Assembly: GCA_964057225.1 (NCBI GenBank)
Contig: OZ059900.1
Location: 14,012,001-14,076,000 of the forward strand
Source of the DNA: Auanema rhodensis
Lineage: Eukaryota > Animalia > Nematoda
Reading direction: 5' to 3'
DNA: 64,000 bases
The position numbers were made by a program, and so were the translations under genes. Below, piece after piece: positions 4,961 through 48,000 of this stretch (its first letter is position 1; the number at the start of each line of letters is the position of its first letter). A model generated the notes under the pieces. The model saw only the letters and a list, made by a program, of their open reading frames with translations. It was not told where the DNA came from and did no database searches.

Positions 4961-7900
4961 TTATTGGTTAGATAAGAGTCGTAATTGGCGTAAAATAGTA
5001 TCAAGTAATTTACGACGATCACCTTTGTTTATTCCGAAGAATCCAGTGTTTCGTTTCTCAAATTCAATCATTCTATATTGAAAGTTGTTTTTTACATAGA
5101 ATCTGGTATCTTTGACTCACTTTTCAAGAAATGTTATAGCAACAGAGGCTTTAACTCTGCCATATTTTCCGGTTTCTTGACCATATTCAGCTATGTAAGT
5201 TGTCCAGTCAGAGCTCATTACCAAGTCCAAAAGTTGTCTAAAAATAAATATATATATGGCGAGATTATCGATCAAAATACAACCTCAAATGAACAAATGT
5301 CATAGATAAAGCATTCTTTTCAAAACCTTCAACAGGGCACCGCATTGTAAACATTTCACATTGCATGACATCCAAACTAAATTGTTCTAAAGCTCCAGGT
5401 GAGACCGATCGTACTTCCGGTTGTAATACTAGTTCAGATAAACTATCTGATAAATGCTTACAGGCCTGGCAATAAATCTCAACAGTATATTAAAAATTGA
5501 GAACTTAAACACCTGCATGCAAACATGTCGACCAAGCGAAGCAGGCAAAACAGAAAAAGTAGTAAAAGTGGTAGACAAAAAATTAATAAGATCACTTATG
5601 TGATCCGAAGCTTGTCCTGAAAAAAAACAAAAACAAATTATTTAGCAAAGATAAAAAACCTGAAGATGCAGGCAACTCCCAATCATATTGAGCTAATTCT
5701 AAAAATTCATCAATTTTATCTCGAATACATTCCTCAATCAGTTGCTCAACCTGAAAAGAAAATAATTCAATTTTATAGTTATAATTATGAATAGCTTCAC
5801 TTCAATTCTGGCATCACTCAACACCCTTTCCGAAATTGGAAGTTGATGGCTTGTGGTTGTCATTGTACCTTCTCCACCTGTGGTTAACGCGGTAACATAT
5901 GTTCCTAATGATTTGCATGCTTTTTCCAAGAAACTCAGATTAATCGTTAATTGTATTAGCTGAACTTATATATTTAAAAATTAATATTTTCGAATACATA
6001 CTGTTGCGAGAGACTTCTTTCTGACTGCAAAACCTTTGATACTTCCCGACCAACGAGATAGAAGAACATTAGCATATCTGCAAAAACATGATTTAAAAAT
6101 GCAAAAACAATAACTATGTATATGATATTACCTACGAACTGTGTCATCAATTTCTGATTGGCTTAGTTGCAGATGCTCCATAAACCGCATGCAGCCAACA
6201 AGATAAGATTTTGCCTGGGTATAAACATTAATAACAAAATTAGAAAACGGAAAACGACGTGGGAACGGGCTCTAAAAATAACAATAACAATATCAAAGAA
6301 AAAGAAAACGAATTACTGAGTCCATCATTCTTTTGTTAGTGGGGAATTGTTTAACAATAGTGAAATATTCCTTTTGATTGTTTACGACTATGGGAGTATA
6401 GTTATCAGATTGTAGTTCTTTCTCAAATTGAGCACAATATTCACTCATTAATATTTCATTGTATTGATCTCTGAAAAAAAATTGGATTTTCCTTTTTGAG
6501 TAATAAAAAACTTTTTTTTACCTGAAATTTTGAAGTAGTACATATAATGGAGTAATGATATATGAATAAGACTTCATTGTAAGGGCAAACAACAAAATGA
6601 CTTTCTTAATTCGCAGCATCATTTCAACATCAGGACAACCTCCCTGCAAATTGAAAAAATTAACTTTTGCATGCTGAATTGGATTTTGATTGGATGAATT
6701 GATTTACTTACAAAACGTGTGTTCATTGTATGAATCACTTTTTTCAAAGCTTCATCCCATAGTTGATTTTTATGAGCAGAAGCTGCAAGTGAAGTTTCTG
6801 TCATAGAAATATGATCTTCTACAACGAAGAAACCAATAATTTCGTTCAAGTAGTCAACATAATTTTTAAGTGAAGACATCTGAAAAATCAAAAACCAATG
6901 TTTGGTGTTATACAAGCGATACCTTCGTTGGTGGTTCTATTACAACTTCACATTGTTCTTTGCGTTGCTCTCGGAAATATGATTCAAATTCATCTTTGTT
7001 ACCAAGGACAGTGAAGATTTGGCAGCACCTGATTATAGATCAAAAGTTATATCATGAATACATTGAAAAAATACCTGTGAATTGGGGTATAATCAATCAA
7101 ATCTTGAGCCGAAAGAGCTTCAGAGTCCTAAAAGGCGCGTTAAAGTTAATTTTCATCAAAACGCAGACAAACTTCTATTTTAACTTTGCTGTTTCTGTTT
7201 TTTATCGACTGTTTCTCATTTTTGCGTATAATGCTACCGTCTGCGGAAACTTCAATTTCCACTTCCGGCAAATCATTTCTCATATCAGATTTAGTTTTTT
7301 CAGGTTCACCTCCAAATGAATGTTGACGGGCAATCTAAATGTATTAACTGAAAATAGTTTGTGATGTCAACATATTTACATCGCGACTAGCATGACGTCC
7401 AACACGACCAGCAACTTTTTTTATGTGTTCCAGGAAATCTTTGAATTCTGAGTATGCTTCGTTCTTAATTTGTTTACGAATGGGAACCATGCTGTTAGCC
7501 AAGTTCTGAGTAAATCTATATTTTTCCGAAAGTGCAAAATGAGTATGATCCAACTCTTCTAAAACTTTTAATGCTTGGTAGTATCTAAAAGATATAATTA
7601 TTAAAAATCTCTGTTCGCTTCCAACTTCTTATCTTCCATGAGCTCATATAACTTTGCATAATTTTCTAACATTGGTAAACAGCTCGACACTTGATACATA
7701 GCTGTAGTCGCATTTTTAATAAGTTTTCTAAAAATAAAACTATAGTTATTTTAAAAATAATGAACCGTACCTATATTTTAAAATTTCTTGATTTTTCTTG
7801 AATATTTCTTGACTTTCTTGTTGAATATCATTATCTATAGTAACTGTTTTGCTCTGAAAGTTATTTTAGCAATAAGTAGTCAAGCATTTTTAGTTTTTAC

Positions 7901-12565: not shown

Positions 12566-13597
12566 TTAACGTCTTGTTCCGTCAGCAAAGAAAACTCCAC
12601 CGTCAACTGCGCAATAGGTGGGGCATATTCCATTTTCTCCTGCGGTGCCATCACATCCTGGTTCTCCTGGATTTCCAGGAGTTCCATCCTCACCAGGTTG
12701 GCCATTAGAACCTTTAGGACCTTTTGGTCCTCGTTTGCCTATATAATAATTACTACCTATATAAAGCATTTGATGAAAATACCTGGAGGTCCTGGACGTC
12801 CAGGACGACCATTTTTACCACTCTGTCCTGGAGGGCCAATTGGTCCTGCTGGTCCTGGTCCACCGGGAATTTCTTCATTGTGACCATTTTCTCCTGGCTG
12901 TCCTGGTGATCCCCGCTGTCCTGGTCTTCCTGGTCTTCCTCGTCTTCCTTTTCTTCCTGGTAATCCAGGTACTGCTTCGCCAGTTCCTGGTTGCCCAGGA
13001 GCTCCTGGTACTCCTGGATCACCTTCTTCTCCTGGAGTTCCAGGAGGTCCTTCTGGTCCAGCTGGACAAGGCTTACATGGAGGAGGTGTGGATGGATGAC
13101 AAGGTTGTCTAGGTGGCCGTCCAGGATTTCCTGGAATTCCATGAGCTCCTGGTTGTCCAGGCTTTCCAGGCTTTCCAGGAGTTCCTACAACACCAGGTGG
13201 ACCAGGTAAACAACATCCAGAACATGTATTAGGCTGTGTTTGATAGAAAGAAAGTGTTTCACTGGTATCATCTTTGGGCAGAACTGGCTCGTCAACATAA
13301 TTTGCTTGGCGAGCAGTACGATTTGAAACTATTTGGCGGATTTGATGAATGTTTGTGAAAATATTATCCGCAGAAGTCTGGAAGAAGTTATTAGATGATA
13401 TAAGTATTCAATTAGAATTTGTAACTTACTTTACAGTATTGGATTTCATGGTTAATAAACTGTTTGGTATGAGCCATATGGTTATATGCCATTGGTAAAG
13501 TGAGGCATATTGAGAGTAAGGCGACAACAGTAAAGGATAAAGTTGCATAAGCAACAACTTTGTATGCTTTTGAACGATTCGAGTTATGAGAATCCAT
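12566..13597 (-). CDS. Nematode cuticle collagen
   Basis: Col_cuticle_N (AYKVVAYATLSF...LPMAYNHM), RTAR furin site, CSGC-CLPGPPG, Gly-X-Y blocks, C-terminal CPTYCAVDGGVFFADGTRR*; two introns. Confidence 0.96.
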
Positions 13598-23178: not shown

Positions 23179-25480
23179 TCACCTGTATACATAATTTAAA
23201 AAAAACATTTAAGAATGAAAATTACAAAAAATAACTTAAAATAAAACCAAAAATGGAATATAAAAACGGAAAGGAATCATTGAGCTGAAATTGGGGAGCA
23301 ATATTAGTCATTTGAAAATTAAAGACTTCGAGCATAGTATAGGGTTTCAGATGAGGTTTCATATCAAATCTGATGCCTTACAATATATGTAGAAAGTGAA
23401 AATTTTGAGATTTTCGAATGACTTGATTGAAACAATAACTTCAAAATAAAGCAACAAAATAAGAACTCTTGTTAAATATATGTTTTGATTTCTTTGTAAA
23501 AACAATAGAAAATATGGTGCAAGATATATTATTTTGGCATATCAACACCATTGTGATAATACATGAAGCAATTATGCTGTTTTCACCAATGCATGAAATG
23601 TTCTTGCATTTGTTGAGAAAAGTTGTTAAAATCAATTATCTTGAATGCTAGTCAGGATTTTGTACATGAGACATTTGCAATGCGGTTCTGAATATCAAGT
23701 TGCATTAGAAATTTAAAGATTGTGCATTTAATAGAACAATCAATAAAACATGACGGTATAAAGCATTTTTGCAGCAATCATCATATAACAAAAAAGGAAC
23801 ATTGAAAAATATTTTTAGCCAAATTGCAACAACAAATAGGTTTGTTTTATAAAATTTTATATTTAGCAAATTAGTATAATTACGAGAGTATAGGCAAGCA
23901 GCATTTAGTTTTGACGAAAAAAAAAGTATCAAAGTAGAAAGTAGAAAAAGAAGTGTATGTAGAGATATTGAAAAAATTCAGAACTAATATCTCCTAGAAA
24001 ATATCTGTTGGTGATAAATTCCGAGAGACAAGAAAAGAGAGTTCGAAGACATCTGTCTACTATTTCGTCAAACAGAAAAATCTCCATCAACACTGTTAAC
24101 ATAATTGCTTACAATAGAGGAATATAAGGCGATACTATTGTTATAAAACAAACAAACAATTAATAAATTAATTGAGTAATTCAAAGCAAGTCTGTGGTAT
24201 ATTCATGAAAAGTTTAGAAAAGCTGTTTAAGAACATGATTAGCACTAATAATGTGTTGAAGAATAACTTGAAATAAATTGAACATGTCAACGCGTTTTGT
24301 TACAATTGCATTTACAATCACATACAAACAAAATTACCTTTGACGAGAGAAAGCAAATGAAAAGGATGGATAAAGTGACAGTTTGAAGAGAAGCAGAAGA
24401 ACCGAAGTAGAAGAAGTAGTATCAATTTCCGAAAATTTCTCAATGGGCGAAAGGCAAAGCTAAGTCAACAAATCTGATTGAGAACGAAAGTCCGCTCTAG
24501 TTCAATCCTTGTCTTCTGTGTACAGTTTGAAAATAGTCGATATTAGTATTCAAGCAAGAGAAGAAAAAATAGGAGAAAGGTTCACAGTATCGTAGTATCT
24601 CAATTTGTATTCATAGTTTTACTTTACATTTACAATAAATAATTTTCATACATATAGGAAAACATAATAAACGTTGCGAATCAACACTACGAATGAAATA
24701 TCTGTTTTACTTGTTATCCCAAATTCTTATCCACAGAGCACTTGTATTTTTATCTGAACAAATCATCTTTACACTGTCAACAGGAGAAATCATCAAGGGT
24801 TTTGCAAGAAATAAGTTGGAGTCTATAAACATGGAAACATTGGCCAACGAATTGAGAGTCTCTAGTAATACATTCTCAAAGATCAAGGAGTCATCAATGT
24901 TAAAAGAAACCTGTTTTATTTAAATTTACGATGCCTCTTCAATCAGTATTCAATAAAGACAATAATTGTTCTGCGATTTCCAGACGTAGGGCTTCATCGA
25001 GCTAATCATGTCGAATATGAAAAAATTGGAAACCGTATAGTAATTTTGATCATTAATAAAAGAACGTTGTATTTATTAATCTAATCAAACTTGCCAAAAC
25101 AATATTAAACATCTTTATCGTCCAGCCTTTTTCTTGAAATCCCTTTTTTTACATCATAATAATAAAATTTTTGTTTTCTTTATTTTCGAACTTTCATATA
25201 TCATAGGTCTAGGTCATTTCGAACAACCAATTGATATGGTCAGGCTTAAAAGTAAAGCATTACATATGCTAATACTATCTCTTGAGAATAGATACATATG
25301 ATATGATAGAATGGAAAAATGAAAAATCATTTGAGACAAAGAATTTATTGAAATTCAAATTAAGCAATATACAAATCAAATATTAAAAATGAATAGAACA
25401 AAAATTAAAAAAAGTATCTCAAGATAAAAGTGATAATTTCGATACAAGAATCAATATAATAATAACGAATCAAATAAATC

Positions 25481-26200
25481 TCATTTGGAAGCAGATATCG
25501 TGGAGTTTAGAACTTCACTAACACGCGAATCCGTTAAATTGTCCACCGTCGAATCGCATAGTGAAAGATGTGGTGAAGATTGCTGCATAGAATTCGTTGG
25601 TTTAACGATTACAGTGGATGATGTTTGTTGCGATTGGGCACTTCTAATAGCCGTTTGGACTGCTAAACAGATATCAGAATCGCCTAATTCTTCTGAGTAC
25701 ACGGAGCTGCTGTCTTCATCGGCTTCTGCACTTGATTCAAGCGTATTGGACTTAGCACGAGGTAAGGCTATTTTAATAACTGCGTGATCTGTTTGATCAA
25801 TGTTAGAAGCTTCAAGAGTAGGGTCCACTACGTTATCTTTTGATAAACTTTGATTAGTTTTTTCAGAAAGTAATGCAGAAGACGTTGCAACGGTATTAGT
25901 GTTTTCAGATTGAGCAATGTGTTCAGTCAGCAATTTCTTGTCATCCGTGTCCTTCTTGTCGTTTGTGTCCTTTTTGCCTTTCTTGTTCTTTTTCTTTCTG
26001 TCATCTTTTTGCTCTTTACTTTCCATTTTTTCCTTATCACCGTCGTTCTTGTTGTCCTTCTGGCTACCGTTATTTCTTTCTCCCTCATTTGGATCTGTCT
26101 CGTTCTAATGGCACCCTTAATTTTTTTGCTGACTGTCACTTGTTTCCATTGGTTGGATTTCCATTTGACCATCATCCTTTTTATCATCATCTCTCTGATC
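25481..26200 (-). pseudogene. Truncated copy 1 of the last exon of the 34150-44120 gene
   Basis: Near-identical to 34150-34890, but with in-frame stops upstream of MESKE (CAA AAA AAT TAA GGG TGC CAT TAG) and 3- and 18-nt deletions. Confidence 0.85.
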
Positions 26201-26661
26201 GAAAAATTGGAAACCGTATAGTAATTTTGATCATTAATAAAAGAACGTTGTATTTAATAATCTAATCAAACTTGCCAAAACAATATTAAACATCTTTATC
26301 GTCCAGCCTTTTTCTTGAAATCCCTTTTTTTACATCATAATAATAAAATTTTTGTTTTCTTTATTTTCGAACTTTCATATATCATAGGTCTAGGTCATTT
26401 CGAACAACCAATTGATATGGTCAGGCTTAAAAGTAAAGCATTACATATGCTAATACTATCTCTTGAGAATAGATACATATGATATGATAGAATGGAAAAA
26501 TGAAAAATCATTTGAGACAAAGAATTTATTGAAATTCAAATTAAGCAATATACAAATCAAATATTAAAAATGAATAGAACAAAAATTAAAAAAAGTATCT
26601 CAAGATAAAAGTGATAATTTCGATACAAGAATCAATATAATAATAACGAATCAAATAAATC

Positions 26662-27381
26662 TCATTTGGAAGCAGATATCGTGGAGTTTAGAACTTCACT
26701 AACACGCGAATCCGTTAAATTGTCCACCGTCGAATCGCATAGTGAAAGATGTGGTGAAGATTGCTGCATAGAATTCGTTGGTTTAACGATTACAGTGGAT
26801 GATGTTTGTTGCGATTGGGCACTTCTAATAGCCGTTTGGACTGCTAAACAGATATCAGAATCGCCTAATTCTTCTGAGTACACGGAGCTGCTGTCTTCAT
26901 CGGCTTCTGCACTTGATTCAAGCGTATTGGACTTAGCACGAGGTAAGGCTATTTTAATAACTGCGTGATCTGTTTGATCAATGTTAGAAGCTTCAAGAGT
27001 AGGGTCCACTACGTTATCTTTTGATAAACTTTGATTAGTTTTTTCAGAAAGTAATGCAGAAGACGTTGCAACGGTATTAGTGTTTTCAGATTGAGCAATG
27101 TGTTCAGTCAGCAATTTCTTGTCATCCGTGTCCTTCTTGTCGTTTGTGTCCTTTTTGCCTTTCTTGTTCTTTTTCTTTCTGTCATCTTTTTGCTCTTTAC
27201 TTTCCATTTTTTCCTTATCACCGTCGTTCTTGTTGTCCTTCTGGCTACCGTTATTTCTTTCTCCCTCATTTGGATCTGTCTCGTTCTAATGGCACCCTTA
27301 ATTTTTTTGCTGACTGTCACTTGTTTCCATTGGTTGGATTTCCATTTGACCATCATCCTTTTTATCATCATCTCTCTGATC
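26662..27381 (-). pseudogene. Truncated copy 2 of the same last exon
   Basis: Same ORF translation as copy 1, offset by 1181 bp. Confidence 0.85.
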
Positions 27382-27842
27382 GAAAAATTGGAAACCGTAT
27401 AGTAATTTTGATCATTAATAAAAGAACGTTGTATTTAATAATCTAATCAAACTTGCCAAAACAATATTAAACATCTTTATCGTCCAGCCTTTTTCTTGAA
27501 ATCCCTTTTTTTACATCATAATAATAAAATTTTTGTTTTCTTTATTTTCGAACTTTCATATATCATAGGTCTAGGTCATTTCGAACAACCAATTGATATG
27601 GTCAGGCTTAAAAGTAAAGCATTACATATGCTAATACTATCTCTTGAGAATAGATACATATGATATGATAGAATGGAAAAATGAAAAATCATTTGAGACA
27701 AAGAATTTATTGAAATTCAAATTAAGCAATATACAAATCAAATATTAAAAATGAATAGAACAAAAATTAAAAAAAGTATCTCAAGATAAAAGTGATAATT
27801 TCGATACAAGAATCAATATAATAATAACGAATCAAATAAATC

Positions 27843-28562
27843 TCATTTGGAAGCAGATATCGTGGAGTTTAGAACTTCACTAACACGCGAATCCGTTAAA
27901 TTGTCCACCGTCGAATCGCATAGTGAAAGATGTGGTGAAGATTGCTGCATAGAATTCGTTGGTTTAACGATTACAGTGGATGATGTTTGTTGCGATTGGG
28001 CACTTCTAATAGCCGTTTGGACTGCTAAACAGATATCAGAATCGCCTAATTCTTCTGAGTACACGGAGCTGCTGTCTTCATCGGCTTCTGCACTTGATTC
28101 AAGCGTATTGGACTTAGCACGAGGTAAGGCTATTTTAATAACTGCGTGATCTGTTTGATCAATGTTAGAAGCTTCAAGAGTAGGGTCCACTACGTTATCT
28201 TTTGATAAACTTTGATTAGTTTTTTCAGAAAGTAATGCAGAAGACGTTGCAACGGTATTAGTGTTTTCAGATTGAGCAATGTGTTCAGTCAGCAATTTCT
28301 TGTCATCCGTGTCCTTCTTGTCGTTTGTGTCCTTTTTGCCTTTCTTGTTCTTTTTCTTTCTGTCATCTTTTTGCTCTTTACTTTCCATTTTTTCCTTATC
28401 ACCGTCGTTCTTGTTGTCCTTCTGGCTACCGTTATTTCTTTCTCCCTCATTTGGATCTGTCTCGTTCTAATGGCACCCTTAATTTTTTTGCTGACTGTCA
28501 CTTGTTTCCATTGGTTGGATTTCCATTTGACCATCATCCTTTTTATCATCATCTCTCTGATC
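27843..28562 (-). pseudogene. Truncated copy 3 of the same last exon
   Basis: Same ORF translation as copy 1, offset by 2362 bp. Confidence 0.85.
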
Positions 28563-29314
28563 GAAAAATTGGAAACCGTATAGTAATTTTGATCATTAAT
28601 AAAAGAACGTTGTATTTAATAATCTAATCAAACTTGCCAAAACAATATTAAACATCTTTATCGTCCAGCCTTTTTCTTGAAATCCCTTTTTTTACATCAT
28701 AATAATAAACTCTTTGTTTTCTTTATTTTCGAAAGTTCATGAAATCATGGATCTACATCATTTCGAACAACTACTTGATATGGTCAGGCTTAAAAGTAAA
28801 GCATTACATATGCTAATACTATCTCTTGAGAATAGATACATATGATATGATAGAATGGAAAAATGAAAAATCATTTGAGACAAAGAATTTATTGAAATTC
28901 AAATTAAGCAATATACAAATCAAATATTAAAAATGAATAGAACAAAAATTAAAAAAAGTATCTCAAGATAAAAGTGATAATTTCGATACAAGAATCAATA
29001 TAATAATAACGAATCAAATAAATCTCATTTGGAAGCAGATATCGTGGAGTTTAGAAGGCTAGCGCACCTAATCACCCATTTTCCAAAAATTGACACAAAT
29101 AGGAGTTTTTCCAACAAATGTGATCAATTTTCATCAATTTACGCACAATTTCAAGATTTTTTCAATTTGGGTGAATTTCGAGACCAAAAGTCTGACGCAC
29201 CAAACACCCATAGTAGGGTGATTACTTTTTTTCACCGCTCTAACAAGCCGAGGATTTAACCGGACATTTATACACTCATTGCAATATTTTGAAGTGAAAA
29301 GAAATCTTTAAAAA

Positions 29315-30080
29315 TTACTTGATTTTCTTTGCAACTGGCTCAAACGGCTGAAACATAACAATTAAACCAAATCTCTAATTAAATCAACTTGCATCTTGAT
29401 TGACGATTTTTGAAAAAGCAAAAATGATTTGTGCAGGGATGATTTTCGTTTCGGGATAATGATTTGCGACCTCAGCGATTGGCATATTTTCTTGATGAAC
29501 AAATTTGAAGTCTTTCTTTTCGACGGAGATCCCGAGGAAGCGTCCCCAATGGTCGAAGATACCGGAGCCAGAATCCCCACATCTTCCATGAGAAGCTCCA
29601 ACGAAGAAACTGGCTAAATCAAACTGTTAATATTTGTAAAGTTAAAAATTAGACATACTGTACATTTCCGATACAGTTCCTTCTTTCCATTTTGGCATGC
29701 GCTGTTCATTTATGCCCAGTTGTCTGTAGGATTGACCACGAAACATCGAATAAAATCCATTTGGATAACACGGAAACATTTGGTCGACGAGCTCAAACAC
29801 CACAATATCGGTGGTATAAGAAATTGTCTTCACAACTGCCTAAATAGCAACTAGTTTAAAAAAATTGGGAAAGAAAAACCTCGCGTTGAATATCCGAGTC
29901 AGTTACGTTATACAAGATGATCTTCTCGCCTTCTTTGAGTATCGAATGTGGACCGTGGTAAAAAGAAGCAGCATGACGTTTATCGATTGGCACCACGCAC
30001 AAATGCAACTCGGCGTCGGGCTTGGAAGTCGTGAAGAGCGAGGCTTCGAGCTTTTGCGCTGTCAAATATTCCATCGCCAT
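29315..30080 (-). CDS. WOSP-like trypsin-fold serine protease A (apparently intact, no signal peptide)
   Basis: Exons 30080-29880, 29839-29659, 29613-29393, 29347-29315. Triad motifs ASFYH, TDIVVF, RCGDSGSGIFD. The last intron is GC-AG (45 nt) giving PFEPVAKKIK*; without it the ORF stops at 29384. Confidence 0.8.
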
Positions 30081-30633
30081 CTAAACAGACATTTATTAGT
30101 AAATAAGGATTATTATTAGTTAATTAGTTGAACGTTTATAATGAAAATGAATAGATTTACACGATTGAAAAAGAGAGAAAGATGGAAAAGTTGTTAAGCA
30201 AACCGGGGAGTGGGAAATGATGCAAACAAGGGTTTGAGAACATAATTCTCTCATATGCAAATTTTTGGAATTCATATTAAAATCAACTGAAATTCGTCAA
30301 ATGTGATGACTATTGGATTTGTGAGTTTTGATTTTTCTTGGGTAGATTGTTTGGGAAGCAATTTAAAAAAAAGCTAATTGTGGTCGATAGCTGTCACATC
30401 AAAATTAGCATCGATAGTTCTATTTTTGGACAGAAATTCTTTTGCATTCCCGGTTTCTTTCATTTTGTTTCACAACGCGCTAGCGTGTTGCGTCGCGTGT
30501 GTCTAATTTAACTGGGGCAAATGTGTGATTGTGTTTGGTCACAGTGAGGAAGAGAAAAGAAGGTCATACAAAGAGAAAGAGAAATTGCCAGGGCAATTTG
30601 AGCTGACGAACAAATTGAGAAAACATTGACGTA

Positions 30634-31188
30634 TTGTTTACTCATCAAGGAAATCATAAATGGGTTGATATTCTTGATGATTTGGTGAAAGGCTATAACA
30701 ATCATTATCACTCTTCAATAAAAATGACTCCAACACAGGCTTCAAAAATAGAAAATGAATCGATAGTTTATAAAAATCTCTTTCCTTCAAGTGAGGAAGA
30801 AAATACTCCAATCAAAGCGAAATTCAAAATAGGAGACACTGTCAGAATTACAAAATATAAAACTATTTTCGATAAAGGATATCTTCCAAATTGGAGTACT
30901 GAAGAATTTAAGATTTCGGAAGTTTATACTGGTGAACCAATTATGTATTCTATTAAAGATCTTGCAGATGAAGAAATCAAAGGAAAGTTTTATGAAGAAG
31001 AACTCACACTTTACAATAATATCAATGAAGAGTATAAAGTTGAAAAAGTGATAAAACATAGAAAATCTAAAGGAGTAAAAGAAGTGTTTGTTAAGTGGTA
31101 TGGATATCCAGATAAGTTTAATTCATGGATAAAGAAAACGGACTTAAATTTCACAAGTGAATCCGAAGGAGATCCTTTGAAGATCTAA
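30634..31188 (+). pseudogene. Maverick c-integrase C-terminal fragment A with chromodomain
   Basis: KWVDILDDLVKGYNNHYHSSIKMTP...FKIGDTVRI...FDKGYLPNWSTEEF...FYEEEL...YKVEKVIKHR...VFVKWYGYPDKFNSWI. Intronless; the N-terminal DDE core and an ATG start are missing. Confidence 0.88.
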
Positions 31189-31193
31189 GCATT

Positions 31194-31226
31194 TTATACA
31201 CTTACAACCTTAACTCTATTATGCTT
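31194..31226 (-). pseudogene. Last ~10 codons of a Maverick major capsid protein (copy A)
   Basis: Translates to KHNRVKVVSV*, matching the KDNRVKVVSI* end of the capsid fragment at 33282; same convergent position just after an integrase stop. Confidence 0.75.
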
Positions 31227-31238
31227 TCAGTTGATAAA

Positions 31239-32700
31239 ATGGCGGATCAAGAAGTTGTCGAAAAAGTGTGTCAGATCTATGCAGATGACGGCGAAAAGTG
31301 CGCAAAGGTTCTGGAAAATCTTTCAATCGAAGATGCGAAATGTGTTGGAAGAGAAAATTCCGCAATGTGGAAGATGCTGAAAAACCTCATTGCCTTTGAT
31401 CAGGTGAGCTTTTATGCTTTAGCAAAGTTTAAATCTGTGAAATTTGAAGTGCTAATTTGCCAAACGCTAATTTTACTGTTTGTTTTTCAGCAATTCAAGT
31501 ATTATTGCGAGAGGGTCGTTCTATCCCCTGATAAAATGCCGCCCCAACCAACAACTCCTGCTAACGTGGAAGGTTTGTATGATTTTCGATTAAATTCATT
31601 ATCTTTCATTAACAGCTTTAATTTGTATGTTTTTATACGAGAAGGATTTTTACTTAAAATACTTATTTTAGCTCAATTCACAACTCCTTCTCGTCCAGGA
31701 ACACCGATGGAGCAAATTTTGAACGAGCGTTCGATGAGCCCGTATCATCCTGAGTGTGAGATTTAACTCGAATTCATATTGAAAACTTATTATCTCTCTT
31801 TAGTGCCGCACGAACCTGCACCATCAGCAAAATGTTTCACTAAATGGACGTTTTACTTGATGGAACAGACGAAATCGACTGCAATTTGTGTTCATCCAAG
31901 ATTTTTCGTCACATTCAGACATGGATCCCACCGTCGCTTCAACATTGGCAATAATTTGAAATTATATCAGTAAGTTCTTAGCATATTTCTTATATTTTGT
32001 TGTTAATTTATAGTGCAGAAAAAGAGGTGGACGAACAAACCGGCGTTGATGTGTGTGTGGCGAAAATTTTTGAAGCATACGATTTCATCTTGCTGAAAAG
32101 CAGATCCAATGTCGTTGATGTAAGTTCTTGAAACATTTTTTATATTTTGATGTTAATTTGCGTATTTTAGCGAAAGCCTTCAATCGCAAATGCTGAAGAC
32201 TCGATACGATTCACATTAGCCGGGTTCGGGAATGACGTGGGATCTCTTTCATATTTGCCAGGCTTGATCCATTCTGTTCGTCGTCATTATTTTTCTGGAT
32301 TGGGTCCATTTATTCTTGGAACAAGTCGAAGCTCGTGTGGTGACTCAGGTAAATATTTTTTTTTTGGTTAATTAAATTCTGATTGGAACTTTTAGGTGGT
32401 GGAATTTGGGGAGCAAAAGGCCTCATCGGGATGAATTATGGGTACGCCATTGAAGAACCACTAGGAAGCCATATCCGAAGCTGCAATTTTCAGCGCGAAA
32501 AATATCATTTCTCCTGCTCTTGAATTCGAAAAGGCTTATATGGTATGTCAATTCATTACTGCTAATACAAATTTATCTAATAACATTTTGTTTAGGAGGA
32601 ACTCGAAAAAGAGAGAAAAGAAGAAGGATCGCCACCAAATAAGAAATCATGCCTTGTGACTGTCGTCGATGGAAGCACATTATATGGAGCTTTTGTTTAG
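31239..32700 (+). CDS. WOSP-like trypsin-fold serine protease B (probable frameshift/stop downstream of the catalytic Ser)
   Basis: TTTCAG acceptor then ATG at 31239; eight exons; triad FFVTFRH, YDFILLKS, SCGDSGGGIWG. The reading frame ends at TGA 32521-32523, while the frame that splices to the final exon (…SPPNKKSC…*) contains TAG at 32462. Confidence 0.78.
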
Positions 32701-32931
32701 TATGTCTTTGTAATGTGGCTTAATTTATTAAATGTTTAAGAATAAAATTTGTTTTTCAAATTCTGTTAGGCTGTGGGTAAGTGGTTCGCCAGACATATTT
32801 TGATCATTTTTCAAAAATAACACATTTTGGGGAAATTAAATATGATTTTCAATAAAAAAATGTTTTTAAAATGTTAAAAATCTGCAAAAATCGCATTTGG
32901 GCAAAAATAAAGGGTTGCAATAAGTTTGCGT

Positions 32932-33265
32932 TTTTCAAGATTGGTGATACTGTTTGTGTCACAAAATATAAAGTCATCTTTGATAAAGGATATCTGCCTA
33001 ATTGGAGTACTGAACAATTCAAAATTTCTGAAGTTCACCCAAATAAAGAAGGGATTACAATGTATTCTATTAAGAAATTGAAGAAATTAAAGGAAAGTTT
33101 TATGAAGAAGAGCTCATACTTTATGATAATGTTACTCAGGAGTGTAAAATCGAGAAAGTTTTGAAGAAGAGAACGAGAAAAGGTGTCAAAGAGCTACTAG
33201 TCAAGTGGTATGGATATCCAGATAAGTTCAATTCTTGGATTACAGAAATAGATATGAAATCCTAA
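32932..33265 (+). pseudogene. Maverick c-integrase C-terminal fragment B with chromodomain, frameshifted
   Basis: FKIGDTVCVTKYKVIFDKGYLPNWSTEQFKISEV, frameshift near 33075, then KGKFYEEEL...LLVKWYGYPDKFNSWI...*; clearly diverged from fragment A. Confidence 0.85.
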
Positions 33266-33281
33266 ACATAAAGAAGTTATC

Positions 33282-33775
33282 TTAAATACTGACAACTTTA
33301 ACCCTATTATCCTTGACTTTAACAATATTTTCTGAAAGAATCAGACAGTAACATTTAGTACTTTGAGCAATGTTTTTATTAAAGGAAGCTTTCATTGTAA
33401 CATCAGGTCGAGATGCAATAATTCTATCATTCTGTTTAGATACATCGAAAAGTAATAGTAGACATTTTCTTCCATAAATACATAATCTTTGACACTTTCA
33501 TAATAACTAAATTCTTTTGCAAAATTGTATTGTTGGACTGCATTGAATTTATCAAAATCGAATTTTAAGCATTCATATGGATATCTTTCACTATTGAGTT
33601 CAACGTAGATTTCTTCAAGCCCACAGTTATCGAACTTTGCAGCATTTAGATAATTATTATCTCTAGCAGCCTGAAATGCAATGACAAGATATTTTATCTT
33701 ATCATATTTAGTTCCAAGTTTCCAAGTAAATTCTCTGGTGGCATTAGGAATATTATAACTTTCAAATTGACGAAA
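33282..33775 (-). pseudogene. Maverick/Polinton double-jelly-roll major capsid protein, C-terminal fragment B
   Basis: FRQFESYNIPNATREFTWKLG...YLVIAFQ...KFDNCGLEEIYVELNSERYP..., frameshift near 33450, then FDVSKQND...CYCLILSENIVKVKDNRVKVVSI*. These motifs resemble animal Polinton MCPs; intronless; convergent with the integrase. Confidence 0.78.
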
Positions 33776-34149
33776 ACAATATTAAACATTCTTATTTTCC
33801 AGTCTTTTTCATAAAATCCCCTTTTTTACTTTATTGTAATAAACTCTTTGTTTTCTTTATTTTCGAAAGTTCATGAAATCATGGATCTACATCATTTCGA
33901 ACAACTACTTGATATGGTCAAGCTTAAAAGTAAAATATTACATATGCTAATGCTATCTCTCGAGAATAGATACATTATGACAGAATGCAAAAATGAAAAA
34001 TAAGTCAAAGAATTTATTGAAATTCAGATTAAGCAATATACAAATCAAATATTAAAAATGAATAGAACAAAAATAAAAAAAAGTATCTCAAGATAAAAGT
34101 GATAATTTCGATACAAGAATCAATATAATAATAACGAATCAAATAAATC

Positions 34150-37100
34150 TCATTTGGAAGCAGATATCGTGGAGTTTAGAACTTCACTAACACGCGAATC
34201 CGTTAAATTGTCCACCGTCGAATCGCATAGTGAAAGATGTGGTGAAGATTGCTGCATAGAATTCGTTGGTTTAACGATTACAGTGGATGATGTTTGCTGC
34301 GATTGGGCACTTCTAATAGCCGTTTGGACTGCTAAACAGATATCAGAATCGCCTAATTCTTCTGAGTACACGGAGCTGCTGTCTTCATCGGCTTCTGCAC
34401 TTGCTTCAAGTGTATTGGACTTAGCACGAGGTAATGCTATTTTAATAACTGCGTGATCTGTTTGATCAATGTGAGAAGCTTCATGAGTATGGTCCACTAC
34501 GTTATCTTTGGATAAACTTTGATTAGTTTTTTCAGAAAGTAATGCAGAAGACGTTGCAACGGTATTAGTGTTCTCAGATTGAGCAATGTGTTCAGTCAGC
34601 AGCTGCTTCTTGTCATCCGTATCCTTCTTGTCGTTTGTGTCCTTTTTGTTCTTTCTGTCCTTTTTACCTTTTTTGTCCTTCTTCTTTCTGTCATCTTTTT
34701 GCTCTTTACTTTCCATTTTTTCCTTATCATCGCCGTTTTTGTTGTCCTTCTGGCTACCGTCTTTCCTTTCTCCGTCATTTGGATCTGTCTCGTTGTAATG
34801 GCACCCTTCCTTTTTTTGCTGACTGTGACTTGTTTCCATTGGTTGAATTTCCATTTGGCCATCATCTTTTTTATCATCATCTTTCTGATCGTCGTCTCCT
34901 TTACCGTCTTTTCTTTTTTTTTCCTTTTCCTCTTTCTTCTTCTTCTTCTTTTTCTTCTTATCCTTTTTCTTCTTCTTTTTCTTCACTTCCAAATCTTCCT
35001 CGGCAACATTGGTCGTTTTGGAATCATCCGTGTTCTTCTTTTTAATACCTTCAGCAGTCGCTACTTTCGCGTCTGTAGTTGTGACCTTCTTTTTCTTTTT
35101 CGACTTATCTTTCTTTGTGCCGCTCAAAAGATCAGAGTTTTGTTTGGCACTCATAGCTGTAGCAGTATCGATTTTCACAGTCGCAATATCAGAATTGGAT
35201 GTGGAGTTAGAAATCTCAGCACCAACGTTCTTCTTCTTTGATGATTTGGAATCCGTTTTCTTTGAAGTAGTAACCTCGCCTTTCGAGGCAGCTTCCTTTG
35301 CTGCTGCTTTTGCGGCGGCCTTAGCGGCTGTTTTCTCAGCTGCTTGTTCTGCTGCTCTTTTTTGCTTCTCCTCTTCTTGTGCTTTTTTCATTTTTTTCTT
35401 AGCTTCTCGTTCTAGAGCTTTAGCCTCTTTCCGCTTCGCTTTAGCTATGTTAGCTTGACGTCGAGCAGCCATACGCTTCGCACGTTTCTTTATGCGCTGA
35501 GCCATTTTCCTTTCTTGTGCAATACGACGTTTGACTTCACGCGATTTTGCTTCTCGCGCTGCAGCCCTTTCCGCTTTAGTGGGTCTACGACGACCCCAGG
35601 CATTTCGCTTTCGCATAGCTTCTTCAGCTGCTTCACGTTCTTGGCGATATTTCTCATCTAATTGCTTTTGACGCTCATCTTCGAACTTTTCCCAAATAAT
35701 AGCAGGTATGTAGTTCACCGTTTTATCTTTAGCTACTGCTCTCATTATAGCATTTCTGAAAAGTTTTTTTTCCATATTATTGAGGAAAGAGTTGCTTACC
35801 TAGTCTGACACATAATTTCCGTCGTCTCATGTACAGTTTTCACTGTTGTCGCCAACATTTCCCGAATATTCCGTATTTTATCTTTATCTTCTTCACTGAG
35901 TTCTGGTTCAGGCTCCTGATCTAAAGCGGAGAAGAGTTTTATTTGATATTTAATTTGAATGACTTACTTTGCAGTTCAAAATTGACTTTACGAGATCCCA
36001 AACAGACAATCTCACTATCGGGATCATCAAGTTTTTCCGGTGTGAACAATGTAGTGTTGCTGCTAGATCGATCTACATCGTCATTAAGTCTGAAAAAATG
36101 CCTGTTACTTCCAAACATAGTCATCTCAAACTCACATTGCTCGAATTTCCAGTAAAGCTTCATGAATGTCTGGATATTTGAAAGGAATGTGCGTAGGCTC
36201 TTTTTTTCTCTCAATATCCTCTAAGTAATATTCAATATGATCATCATATAAAGGAACATAATCATGTGGTCTGGAAATTTCTTCATGAAACAATGAAAAT
36301 ATATTTGTGATTACTTGAGAACTGTGCGCTCGCCACGACGATTTATGAAAAATCCATGAGGATTAGATGATACTTTTGGTCCAACCCATCCCGGTGAAGC
36401 AAACTGAAATAAGCTATTTATTTCTGTATTGTCATTGTTCACATTACCTTCATCATAGCATTCAGTTGAAGACGATCAGGATTACAAATTAATGAGTCAT
36501 TTTTTTCACCAAAAGGAGGCCGACGCTCAGGAAGAAACTGTATTTGTGGAATCATAAGAGATTGACGGATACGCTTATATCTCTTATGCATGCGATCAAT
36601 GTCTGTATCGTTTTGTTCTAAAAAAAACTATAGTAGAAAAAGGAAATTCAAGCTTTCTACCTTTGTCTAAAGTGATATCTCGACAGATTTTGAAATACTC
36701 AGCAGGCAAATAGCGTTTTGAGAACGCTAAACACATATCTAATAGACTATATTCATATTGTCGTTGTTTATCGAGATCGGTATCAATTTTTGCTAATTTC
36801 AGTCGAGCAAGTCTGAAAAACAATAAATTATTGCAAACTTCAAGTATATAAATACTGACTCCATATCATAATCATCCGTCTTGAAAGAATTTTCGGAAGC
36901 TTTTTCAGAAGATTTTTCAGAAGATTTTTTCAGTTTTTTCTTAACAACAGGCTCTTCATTTATTTGCAAAGCGCATTTGGCTGATTCATCTTCTCCATCG
37001 CTGTCGACAACGTTTTCTCTCATTTTGAACAGGTCATTTCTCATTGATGAAAACTGTCGTGTTGAACAAATTAAATTATTATTGCCCATCGCTGCCTTGT

Positions 37101-45023: not shown

Positions 45024-48000
45024 TTAACAATAATTACAAGCAGCTGGGCAATTTTTTTTCATGTAATTCATGAATAAACCTTCACAAAAACCTGCAGCTT
45101 TCCAGTTGTCACAGAAATGCTTCTTATTTTGGCATGATTTGGTTCCTATGGGAGCACTTGGAGTTGAATTGACTTTTGGAGGTAATGTGGATTGACTGAA
45201 AAATTAAAATTTATATTTAAAAAAATTGATATTAGCAGCAGTACTTTGGAGGACGGAATGTAACATAAGGCATGTTTGTCACAATAGCTGGAGCAATTGG
45301 TCGGCTGGTGACCGAAACGTCGGGAACTTCCGTTGGGGGTGGTTTGAAACAGAATCCACAACTTTTTGGACAGAATGTCTTCATGAAATCACTTGAGAGT
45401 TTGCAATATCTGAAACACTTGGTTAACATAACTGAGTTTTTTAGACTTAGAACCTTTGTTTAACAAGTGTAACACAATCAACTCTCAGGTCTTCACAGTC
45501 AGACACTCCTGGATTCACAGTTGTGGTAGGGATAGGTACAGTAGGTAAAATAGTTGAAGTTGGTAAAGTCACAGGAGAACTTGTAGTTGTAACCACTGGT
45601 GCTAAAAGCAAGTACTAAGTAAATTTGAAAATCAAAATCAATTACATGGTTTGCAGAAGCCGCAAGACACTGGACAGTAGTCTTTCATCCATCCTGGATT
45701 TCTAGTACACCAGCCTATGAAAATAAAATGTTAGCTCAACATATAGTAATATGGTACCATTGGCAGCCAAGTTATCGCAGTCTCCACGAGTATTGGAGCA
45801 TGTTTGTGGTTGAGCAGTTGTGTATGGAGGAGGAGTCACAGCAATAGTTGAAGTTATAACTGGTGTAGTGGTTGTTGTTGTTGCTGGAGGCGTGGTTGTT
45901 GTTTGAATTCCAACTTGGTCTACAAAATGAATTGAAGTTATCCCTGTTGAACATCTTTTCTATTGTACCAGTCGGGCACCCATAAAGAGTATTAATCTTG
46001 AACATGTCAGTTTTAGAAAATCCGGATCGTTGACCAATTTGAGCATTGCTTTGTTTTGGTACCATAGTAGGTTGACCATTTTTAGAGAAAGCCTTGAAAT
46101 ATGAATGTTTTACAAAACAAACTTAAAAACGTTTTGTTAACAAACTTTTCCTCCGTAATGCATGATTGAAGTGTAGTCATACTTGGTTCCTAAATCGGAT
46201 ATAGTTCCATGACCATATTTTTCAAATTGGCCTTGCATTCCAGATTGGATATTGTTCCACATGATAGTGATATAGTCATCACGATCAGTTCTACTTTGTT
46301 CATGGAAAAATCCAACAGCATGCATCAATTCGTGAATGATGATGCCTTTTTGAATACATCCGGAGCCAAGAGATAACATTTGCTTTCCACCTAATATAAA
46401 AAGTTAACCCGATTCTTGTAGCTTGCTTGTCTCACCCATACGGCCAACCATAGAATAACAACCACGATCAGGATAAATATGAACGTAATTGTTGTCAGAA
46501 CCTTCTTTTGGAACCCACTTGATACAAGTATGAGTAGAATACTCTTGCATTGATGCCGCAATGAGTGAACGACTGAAAGACAAGATAAATATAAGTTCAG
46601 TTTTCTTAATCTTTTTTTTTTCATATTTAATCTAGCAACTTATCTTATTATATTGTAAAAAGATAAAGACAAATGCTTTAGTTTGAACATTGAGTAATGT
46701 TTTGATGTCTACACTCAAGAGAAGCACTCAAAAAATTACTGAAATTGTCCCTTTCATCTTATTATTTCAACTATCTACAAATCATTTTGTTCTTTTTATG
46801 TAAACAATCTTAAAGCTTTACGTGAAGATATCTGTTGAGTGCGCGTGAGCAAGACTGTCTAAACGTTCAGACAGCTAAGAGTACACATAAATTTATAAGA
46901 CCACGAAACAAAAAGATGAACCTTGCGAGTCAAGCTCAATTGGTCAATAGATTGCGAGATGAGCTTTTTTGTCGGATGAAGAGGCACGCGCTGTCAAAAT
47001 AATAAGATGAAAAGAAAAGAGATGAAATGGGTATGATGGAAATAATAGTGAATAAATATGGATAAGTAGATATAGAAGAGAATTTAAAAAACCGAAAAAA
47101 GAAAAATCGTACTCAGGTTCATCTGCTCACCTGAGTGAGCACTAAAAATGAGTTTGACAAGTTCCATCTTCAATAATAACCTTACTTGTTTTCATGATGA
47201 CCCTCAATTTCACAATTTCATAGTATTTCCTTCAGAAACTCCTACCAGTGTATTCAAAACATTAAGCCCTTATCAATTAAACTTTCGAAATCGTTGTGTT
47301 TAAAAGTTATTTTTTTCAAAGTCATTGTGAAAAAGAGCAAATTAAACCTGTATGAGCTATATTGACTACTGATAGTATATGGGATGCGTCCATTTGGCCA
47401 AAGCTGATGTCTGTTTTTAATAGCATTGTAGAAATTTCCATTTGCAGATTCTTTGGCTCCACCAGTCAAAAAAGCTTCAATCGTGGAAGCACTCAACTAA
47501 AAAAAAATGAAAAAAGTTACTATTTCAGAATATCTATAAAAATGTGATTCAACATCAATTTCATACAATTGTACTCGAATTTCCATTTTTGAGCGAAATT
47601 TGATGCGGTAATTTTGTAGGAAAATAGCACTCAATATTTGATTTTTAAGTGTTGACAAACTAGATATAGATAGACATACACTTGTCTGAGATGAATTGTA
47701 TGTTTTAGATTTCCCTTTGTTATGTCGCTTTTAGAAAGTTCTTTAGCTTGGTCAAGCAATTGTTACTACTAACTGACCAGTAAGAATATTTTAGTGATAT
47801 TAAAAAATAATTTGAAATTCTTGGATTGACATGAAACAGCTAAAGAACATCAGCGCAGACGTTTAGAACTTACATTAGCATTAGCAATATCTCCTTCAAA
47901 GCGATTTCTGTTGTACATGGCGTCTGAATCCCACATGTCTGCTTCAGGAGGAGCAAATTGACTTTCCATTAGAATTTGGCCCCTACGAAAATCCTCTGAT

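Follow-up and report, generated by a model that had tools for sequence, protein, structure and literature searches.

What has become of two protease genes that lie among the remains of a Maverick in a nematode chromosome, and is there reason to regard them as parts of a selfish locus? This question is raised by a stretch of 64,000 nt from Auanema rhodensis (assembly GCA_964057225.1, contig OZ059900.1, positions 14,012,001 to 14,076,000 of the forward strand), in the following referred to as the window, which contains a Maverick-derived block with two spliced protease genes, here designated A and B. An initial annotation of this DNA had suggested a horizontally acquired, possibly selfish (toxin-like) locus with proteases resembling the WOSP family, to which the toxin MSFT-1 of Caenorhabditis briggsae is related. 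We consider it likely that the block is an immobile, decayed Maverick remnant with two intron-bearing cargo proteases of the WOSP superfamily, which probably work, are retained by the host and are not toxic. The coordinates of the features are compiled in Table 1.

The origin of the block from a Maverick/Polinton element is supported by its gene content, in which chromodomain integrase tails adjoin a double-jelly-roll capsid piece. Integrase remnants 1 and 2 match Pfam Chromo (5.9e-10 and 6e-9, respectively), and the capsid remnant matches the double jelly roll-like domain PF21738 (2.4e-10, positions 153-254 of 316). An integrase of a long terminal repeat (LTR) retrotransposon was ruled out by the adjacent capsid piece and by the existence of stand-alone relatives with rve and Chromo domains. 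The last 189 codons of remnant 1 (30619-31185) are unbroken and are preceded by a decayed stretch with up to two stops. About 124 N-terminal residues (median) of its relatives have no counterpart in the block, which means that the catalytic core was lost by truncation of the 5′ part. The best relative of remnant 1 is a 234 aa "Chromo domain-containing protein" of C. angaria (95-98% identical), followed by proteins with rve and Chromo domains that are 61-73% identical. Mavericks of different species can be almost the same in sequence. The intact 189-codon tail together with the annotated C. angaria copy raises the question of expression or co-option of chromodomain tails.

The two integrase tails share about 75% DNA identity, and a difference of about 25% suggests that at least two copies, or an old internal duplication, probably contributed to the block. 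We counted one truncation and at most two stops for remnant 1, two truncations and one frameshift for remnant 2, and two truncations for the capsid piece. Pfam scans of the block gave no further match, and no polymerase, ATPase or maturation protease was found in it. Terminal inverted repeats are absent; inverted repeats do not exceed 31 nt (at 71% complementarity), and none is located at the block edges. Without terminal repeats, integrase core and polymerase the remnant is immobile. The integrase and capsid remnants described in the initial annotation, as well as the decay of the viral genes, were thus found again.

In order to follow the proteases, searches were run exon by exon or with natural relatives, and evidence on the fold was taken from models of the relatives. 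Single exon pieces are too short for Pfam protease matches, and family profiles were built from relatives, all of which give sub-threshold matches to Pfam Trypsin_2. When the whole window was scanned in six frames (2728 pieces) with the family profile, gene B (three pieces) and gene A (three exon pieces) supplied exactly the six best matches, collinear within each gene. The two genes are on opposite strands and only distantly alike.

Gene B has exons free of stops and carries the His/Asp/Ser triad at the invariant columns of the family. Its introns have 40, 45 and 45 nt; the first two have GT-AG borders and are in matching phase, while the last has a GC donor that is also present in an Auanema relative. 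The last exon comprises only 10 codons and bears the C-terminal motif of the family. The pieces match the profile of relatives collinearly at positions 1-68, 67-125 and 127-199 of 210, with 81, 67 and 101 bits, and the three intron positions are those seen in relatives from C. bovis, C. auriculariae, Auanema, Aphelenchoides and C. angaria. The catalytic His is residue 42, and the alignment with relatives of 205-216 aa starts at residue 1, which leaves no space for an N-terminal ubiquitin-like domain.

Compared to its C. bovis relative, gene B shows a nonsynonymous divergence (dN) of 0.33, a proportion of silent differences (pS) of 0.93, that is, saturated silent sites, and a third-position identity of 34%. 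By these values gene B looks like a constrained enzyme and not like a fast-evolving one. Accelerated evolution in the manner of venom genes, for which introns that are more alike than exons could speak, was ruled out by the saturated silent sites and a dN of only 0.33. The structure model of a C. bovis relative (predicted local distance difference test, pLDDT, 81) matched DegS, HtrA1, Rv3671c and MamO at a template modelling (TM) score of about 0.65 in Foldseek. We also tried a kinship with alphavirus capsid proteases, which were the closest solved structures in the profile search (E 4.5e-5); Pfam Peptidase_S3 stayed below threshold and the fold searches preferred DegS/HtrA, with viral proteins not standing out, so that this match of the gene B clade is treated as general likeness of trypsin folds.

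Gene B matches from end to end a group of protease-only relatives of about 200-220 aa, among them the C. japonica protein A0A8R1EQ79 and the C. bovis trio CAB3406282/84/86. Further members of this group occur in C. nigoni, C. auriculariae, C. angaria, Auanema, Mesorhabditis and Aphelenchoides besseyi. Gene B shares with these proteins the length and the three intron positions, and it resembles them in its short introns and upstream region; protein identity to any full-length member does not exceed 47%, the value reached with C. japonica and C. bovis. The annotated end of the Auanema sp. JU1783 protein P0015 (L005, 882-929) falls on the site of the last intron of the relatives and is followed by intron-like sequence with a GC donor, so that the last exon is probably lacking in the deposited annotation. 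An assembly of the fungus gnat Bradysia odoriphaga (JAFDOW010000101.1, L007, protein P0012) contains another relative of the protease-only type, in which the three introns have the same positions but lengths of 0.6-3 kb. Rather than contamination from a nematode, this seems to be a gene resident in the insect, and it hints that the cargo family extends beyond nematodes.

Gene A has a different architecture. Its first six exons are in phase and free of stops, and the introns that delimit them are canonical (GT-AG) and 44-99 nt long. The Ser motif is interrupted by an intron, the triad is kept in invariant columns, and a polyadenylation signal (AATAAA) is located at 32741-32746. For the N-terminal module (exons 1-2), identity to C. 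bovis P0002 amounts to 79% at the DNA level and 67% at the protein level, with a synonymous divergence (dS) of 0.83 and a dN of 0.17; the position of the first intron is common to both genes, and the module is also close to that of C. auriculariae proteins. The protease exons are very divergent. They were picked up by the family profile in their expected order (E 1e-6, 3e-3 and 0.2), and pieces match the profile of the MSFT-like clade collinearly at E 1e-4 and 5e-3. This discordance within one gene, with an N-terminal module near C. bovis and an almost unalignable protease part, fits the recombination between Mavericks that was proposed by Widen et al. 2023.

The link to MSFT-1 was made through the C. 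briggsae protein P0052. Profile A1, built from relatives of the window genes, retrieved at E 3e-51 the 90%-identity cluster in which P0052 is grouped with a protein of C. auriculariae. P0052 has 325 aa and carries K8, K12, K25, K29, H148, D184 and S256, which are the residues numbered for MSFT-1 (Widen et al. 2023), and hence it is MSFT-1 or a near-identical allele. C. bovis P0002 is 59% identical to P0052 over its whole sequence. In alignment A2 the protease parts are 59-85% identical and are combined with one of two N-terminal modules that are unrelated in sequence: the module of gene A, C. bovis and C. auriculariae, or that of P0052/P0048, which is labelled TDP-43 N-terminal-like by UniRef. 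This pattern of two modules matches the modular domain make-up described for the family (Widen et al. 2023). Helices are predicted in the model of the gene A-type module, but with pLDDT below 50, and the structure model of the MSFT-like clade was poor (pLDDT 49) and was not used for fold search.

These data support the view that gene A is a divergent member of the WOSP superfamily, kin of the MSFT-1 orthogroup, while gene B, which is compact and has the protease domain only, most likely belongs to a sister clade within the superfamily. No block piece and no relative matched a PDZ domain, and direct reading of genes A and B revealed no hydrophobic N-terminus or signal peptide, both N-termini being hydrophilic. 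As far as can be judged from sequence, both genes most likely encode active proteases. This is in agreement with the initial annotation, which had recognised two spliced, signal-less proteases of trypsin fold; triads, introns, hydrophilic N-termini and the DegS/HtrA-like fold of a relative all bear this out. It had described one protease (its protease A) as looking intact; in our analysis both genes look readable, and one of them, gene A, contains a doubtful spot. The proposed assignment to WOSP stands as kinship with the WOSP/WASP proteases of Widen et al. 2023, while gene B fits the family description less well.

Several observations weigh against this assignment and the cargo reading. Gene B does not have the ubiquitin-like N-terminal domain of the published family description, and its clade shares only 21-29% identity with the MSFT-like clade (BLASTP E 1e-6 to 1e-10). 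Pairwise searches with MSFT-like proteins miss the protease exons of gene A. In order to reach the conserved C-terminal part of gene A and its polyadenylation signal, one further canonical short intron or a single frameshift has to be assumed; at this doubtful spot the loop lengths of the family favour one option and the splice signals the other. Finally, within the block cargo status can be read from adjacency only.

Table 1. Features of the block and its surroundings (positions in the window)
Feature	Position	Strand	Description
Cuticle collagen exon	12760-13407	-	host gene
Tandem array	25021-29056	-	three full 1181-bp units and a 509-bp partial unit
Maverick-derived block, whole	29057 to ~33761		~4.7 kb, interrupts host-derived tandem array
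Gene B	29315-30080	-	HtrA-like serine protease, protease domain only, 211 codons
Gene B exons	30080-29880, 29839-29659, 29613-29393, 29347-29315	-	stop in last exon
Gene B upstream region	30081-30300	-	TATA-like stretch; acceptor-like site directly before ATG
Integrase remnant 1	30580-31188	+	C-terminal part only, chromodomain, natural stop
Gene A	31221-32700	+	spliced; N-terminal module, linker, divergent HtrA-like protease part
Integrase remnant 2	32835-33262	+	inner and C-terminal piece, chromodomain, both ends cut, one frameshift
Major-capsid remnant	33395-33781	-	129 codons open, both ends cut, no stop
Host gene and 3′ flank	33762-35775	-	Lys/Glu-rich open reading frame of 541 codons at 34150-35775
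Astacin metalloprotease exons	45705-46403	-	host gene; includes zinc-binding motif

The borders of the block are given by host sequence. Identity to the array ends exactly at 29056 and array-like sequence starts again at 33762-33775, so that the borders of the initial annotation (29057-33775) were right within about 15 bases. Each array unit repeats the coding sequence for the C-terminal part of the host gene (34150-35775) together with its 3′ flank, and an open copy of this C-terminal part (181-207 codons) is present in each of the three 1181-bp units. The units are 99.9-100% identical to each other and 91% identical to the native host copy; their near identity reflects either a very recent amplification or an artefact of the assembly. 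About 430 bp of host array sequence is duplicated, with one copy on each side of the block. This is far too long for a target-site duplication, and a target-site duplication of a few bases was not found at either junction. Since the right junction cuts the capsid piece, at least the right edge results from later rearrangement and is not an end of integration. The stop codon of the host gene is separated from the start of the block by about 390 bp. This agrees with the initial annotation, which had placed the block at the 3′ end of a host gene within rearranged surroundings.

In the course of events that we propose, Maverick/Polinton DNA from at least two copies, or with an old internal duplication, would have come to lie about 390 bp behind the host gene, and a later rearrangement would have severed the capsid gene and left duplicated host sequence on both flanks. 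Genes A and B would be cytosolic, signal-less HtrA-like proteases with promoters of their own, which the host retained as ordinary enzymes.

The surroundings have the character of a nematode chromosome. The window is AT-rich (GC about 0.32) and contains nematode-type genes, among them a cuticle collagen and an astacin, with short introns ending in TTTCAG or TTTTAG. No Rfam matches were found in the window. A weak integrase-like match at 6763-6894 (minus strand; E 0.004, 34% identity over 44 residues) may be an old remnant or due to chance.

A further property of gene B concerns its non-coding parts. Seven gene-only loci of protease relatives with 200-base flanks (L001-L007), some with long introns, were available, and the conservation described in the following concerns L001, L004, L005 and L006. 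In a comparison of gene B with its C. bovis relative, identity amounts to 85% and 80% in two short introns, while the exons reach 62-63%; the conserved introns of gene B occupy 29348-29392 and 29614-29658. Controls with shuffled and unrelated introns gave mean identities of 54-57% and a maximum of 69%. The last intron is also 78-84% identical to introns of C. auriculariae and Aphelenchoides, and about 110 nt before the ATG are conserved with C. bovis, C. auriculariae and Auanema relatives. No RNA structure was predicted for the conserved introns. Conservation of introns and upstream region despite saturated silent sites indicates that the exons are old and constrained, and that the non-coding parts are kept for a reason of their own. 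One could go further and regard protease-only genes of this kind as a separate mobile cargo cassette with a functional non-coding scaffold, consisting of the two 45-nt introns and about 110 nt upstream, which are 70-85% identical across Caenorhabditis, Auanema and Aphelenchoides. We put this forward as a speculative idea that is rather unlikely to be correct. If true, the scaffold could act as a set of signals for expression in many different hosts, or provide joints of homology at which Mavericks exchange cargo modules.

Could the locus nevertheless be selfish? One of the proteases would then be a maternal or zygotic toxin and an unrecognised antidote would lie nearby, as is the case for msft-1 with tlpr-1. 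The family includes a proven toxin (Widen et al. 2023), the cargo is readable after decay of its vector, and the region is rearranged and has a very young tandem array alongside, all of which would suit a toxin-antidote element. The divergence pattern of gene B is, however, that of a constrained enzyme (dN 0.33 with saturated silent sites), and non-toxins make up most of the 235 family members that have been published (Widen et al. 2023). We found neither an antidote candidate nor a Mutator-like element (MULE): open reading frames of at least 110 aa within about 8 kb gave no such Pfam match, although an antidote without known domains would escape this search. Within the block no open piece of appreciable size is left unassigned. 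The toxin-like reading of the initial annotation is therefore unsupported; we regard it as very unlikely, and the block gives no reason to infer a new toxin. The retention of cargo after decay of the vector, which the same annotation had proposed, is supported by readable proteases among wrecked viral genes.

It is also conceivable that one or both proteases are dead relics, unexpressed pseudogenes that are not yet visibly broken. The adjoining viral genes are wrecked, the doubtful spot of gene A is possibly a frameshift, and its protease part is far more divergent than the N-terminal module. Yet gene B has kept 211 unbroken codons, three pairs of splice sites, the triad and a conserved upstream region, and in gene A the upstream introns all retain canonical splice sites, and triad and polyadenylation signal are preserved, which makes this explanation improbable. 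Another possibility is that the proteases were resident host genes and that Maverick fragments landed next to them later, in which case they would not be cargo. Only 20% of the published family members are near Maverick genes (Widen et al. 2023), and the C. bovis relatives are in tandem clusters on large chromosomal contigs. In the window, on the other hand, the host array is interrupted by a block that encloses both genes, and it returns only beyond them. Gene A begins 36 bases past the stop of integrase remnant 1, the 3′ end of gene B faces the left edge, and this arrangement fits the published cargo layout. We consider an arrival of the proteases before the Maverick extremely unlikely. Adjacency and the published pattern together suggest that the proteases arrived as cargo of the decayed Maverick, and we infer that both are expressed, active and non-toxic. 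Horizontal acquisition is plausible; it is suggested, short of proof, by the published pattern and by the dS of the gene A N-terminal module compared to C. bovis.

The block resembles the nematode Mavericks described by Widen et al. 2023 in having a spliced HtrA-like protease gene beside an integrase, intronless and mostly decayed viral genes, and readable cargo. In that study spliced cargo adjoins the integrase and most nematode Mavericks are decayed. The published criterion for association is a distance within 6 kb of Maverick core genes, and the integrase and capsid remnants are no farther than 1-4 kb from genes A and B. The block differs by its two very different proteases, two integrase tails and the lack of terminal repeats and polymerase. 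Its nearest protein relatives are also more distant, with 47% identity for gene B and 67% for gene A (N-terminal module only), in contrast to more than 95% in the published recent transfers.

Gene A shares with MSFT-1, the toxin of the msft-1/tlpr-1 pair of C. briggsae, the superfamily, the order of N-terminal module, Pro-rich linker and protease, the triad and the lack of a PDZ domain. MSFT-1 has a ubiquitin-like N-terminal domain and is located in a MULE together with the antidote gene, whereas the module of gene A is a different, probably helical one and gene B has none. The HtrA/Deg proteases DegS and HtrA1 have the triad in common with the genes studied here and a fold like that of the gene B relative, but the genes of the block encode neither PDZ domain nor signal peptide, and identity is only 12-17%.

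Our data thus add one more case in which nematode Mavericks ferry spliced proteases and the cargo outlives the vector, here with two very different proteases in one scrap of DNA. The conserved introns and upstream region of gene B bear on the question of how cargo genes stay expressible after a change of host.

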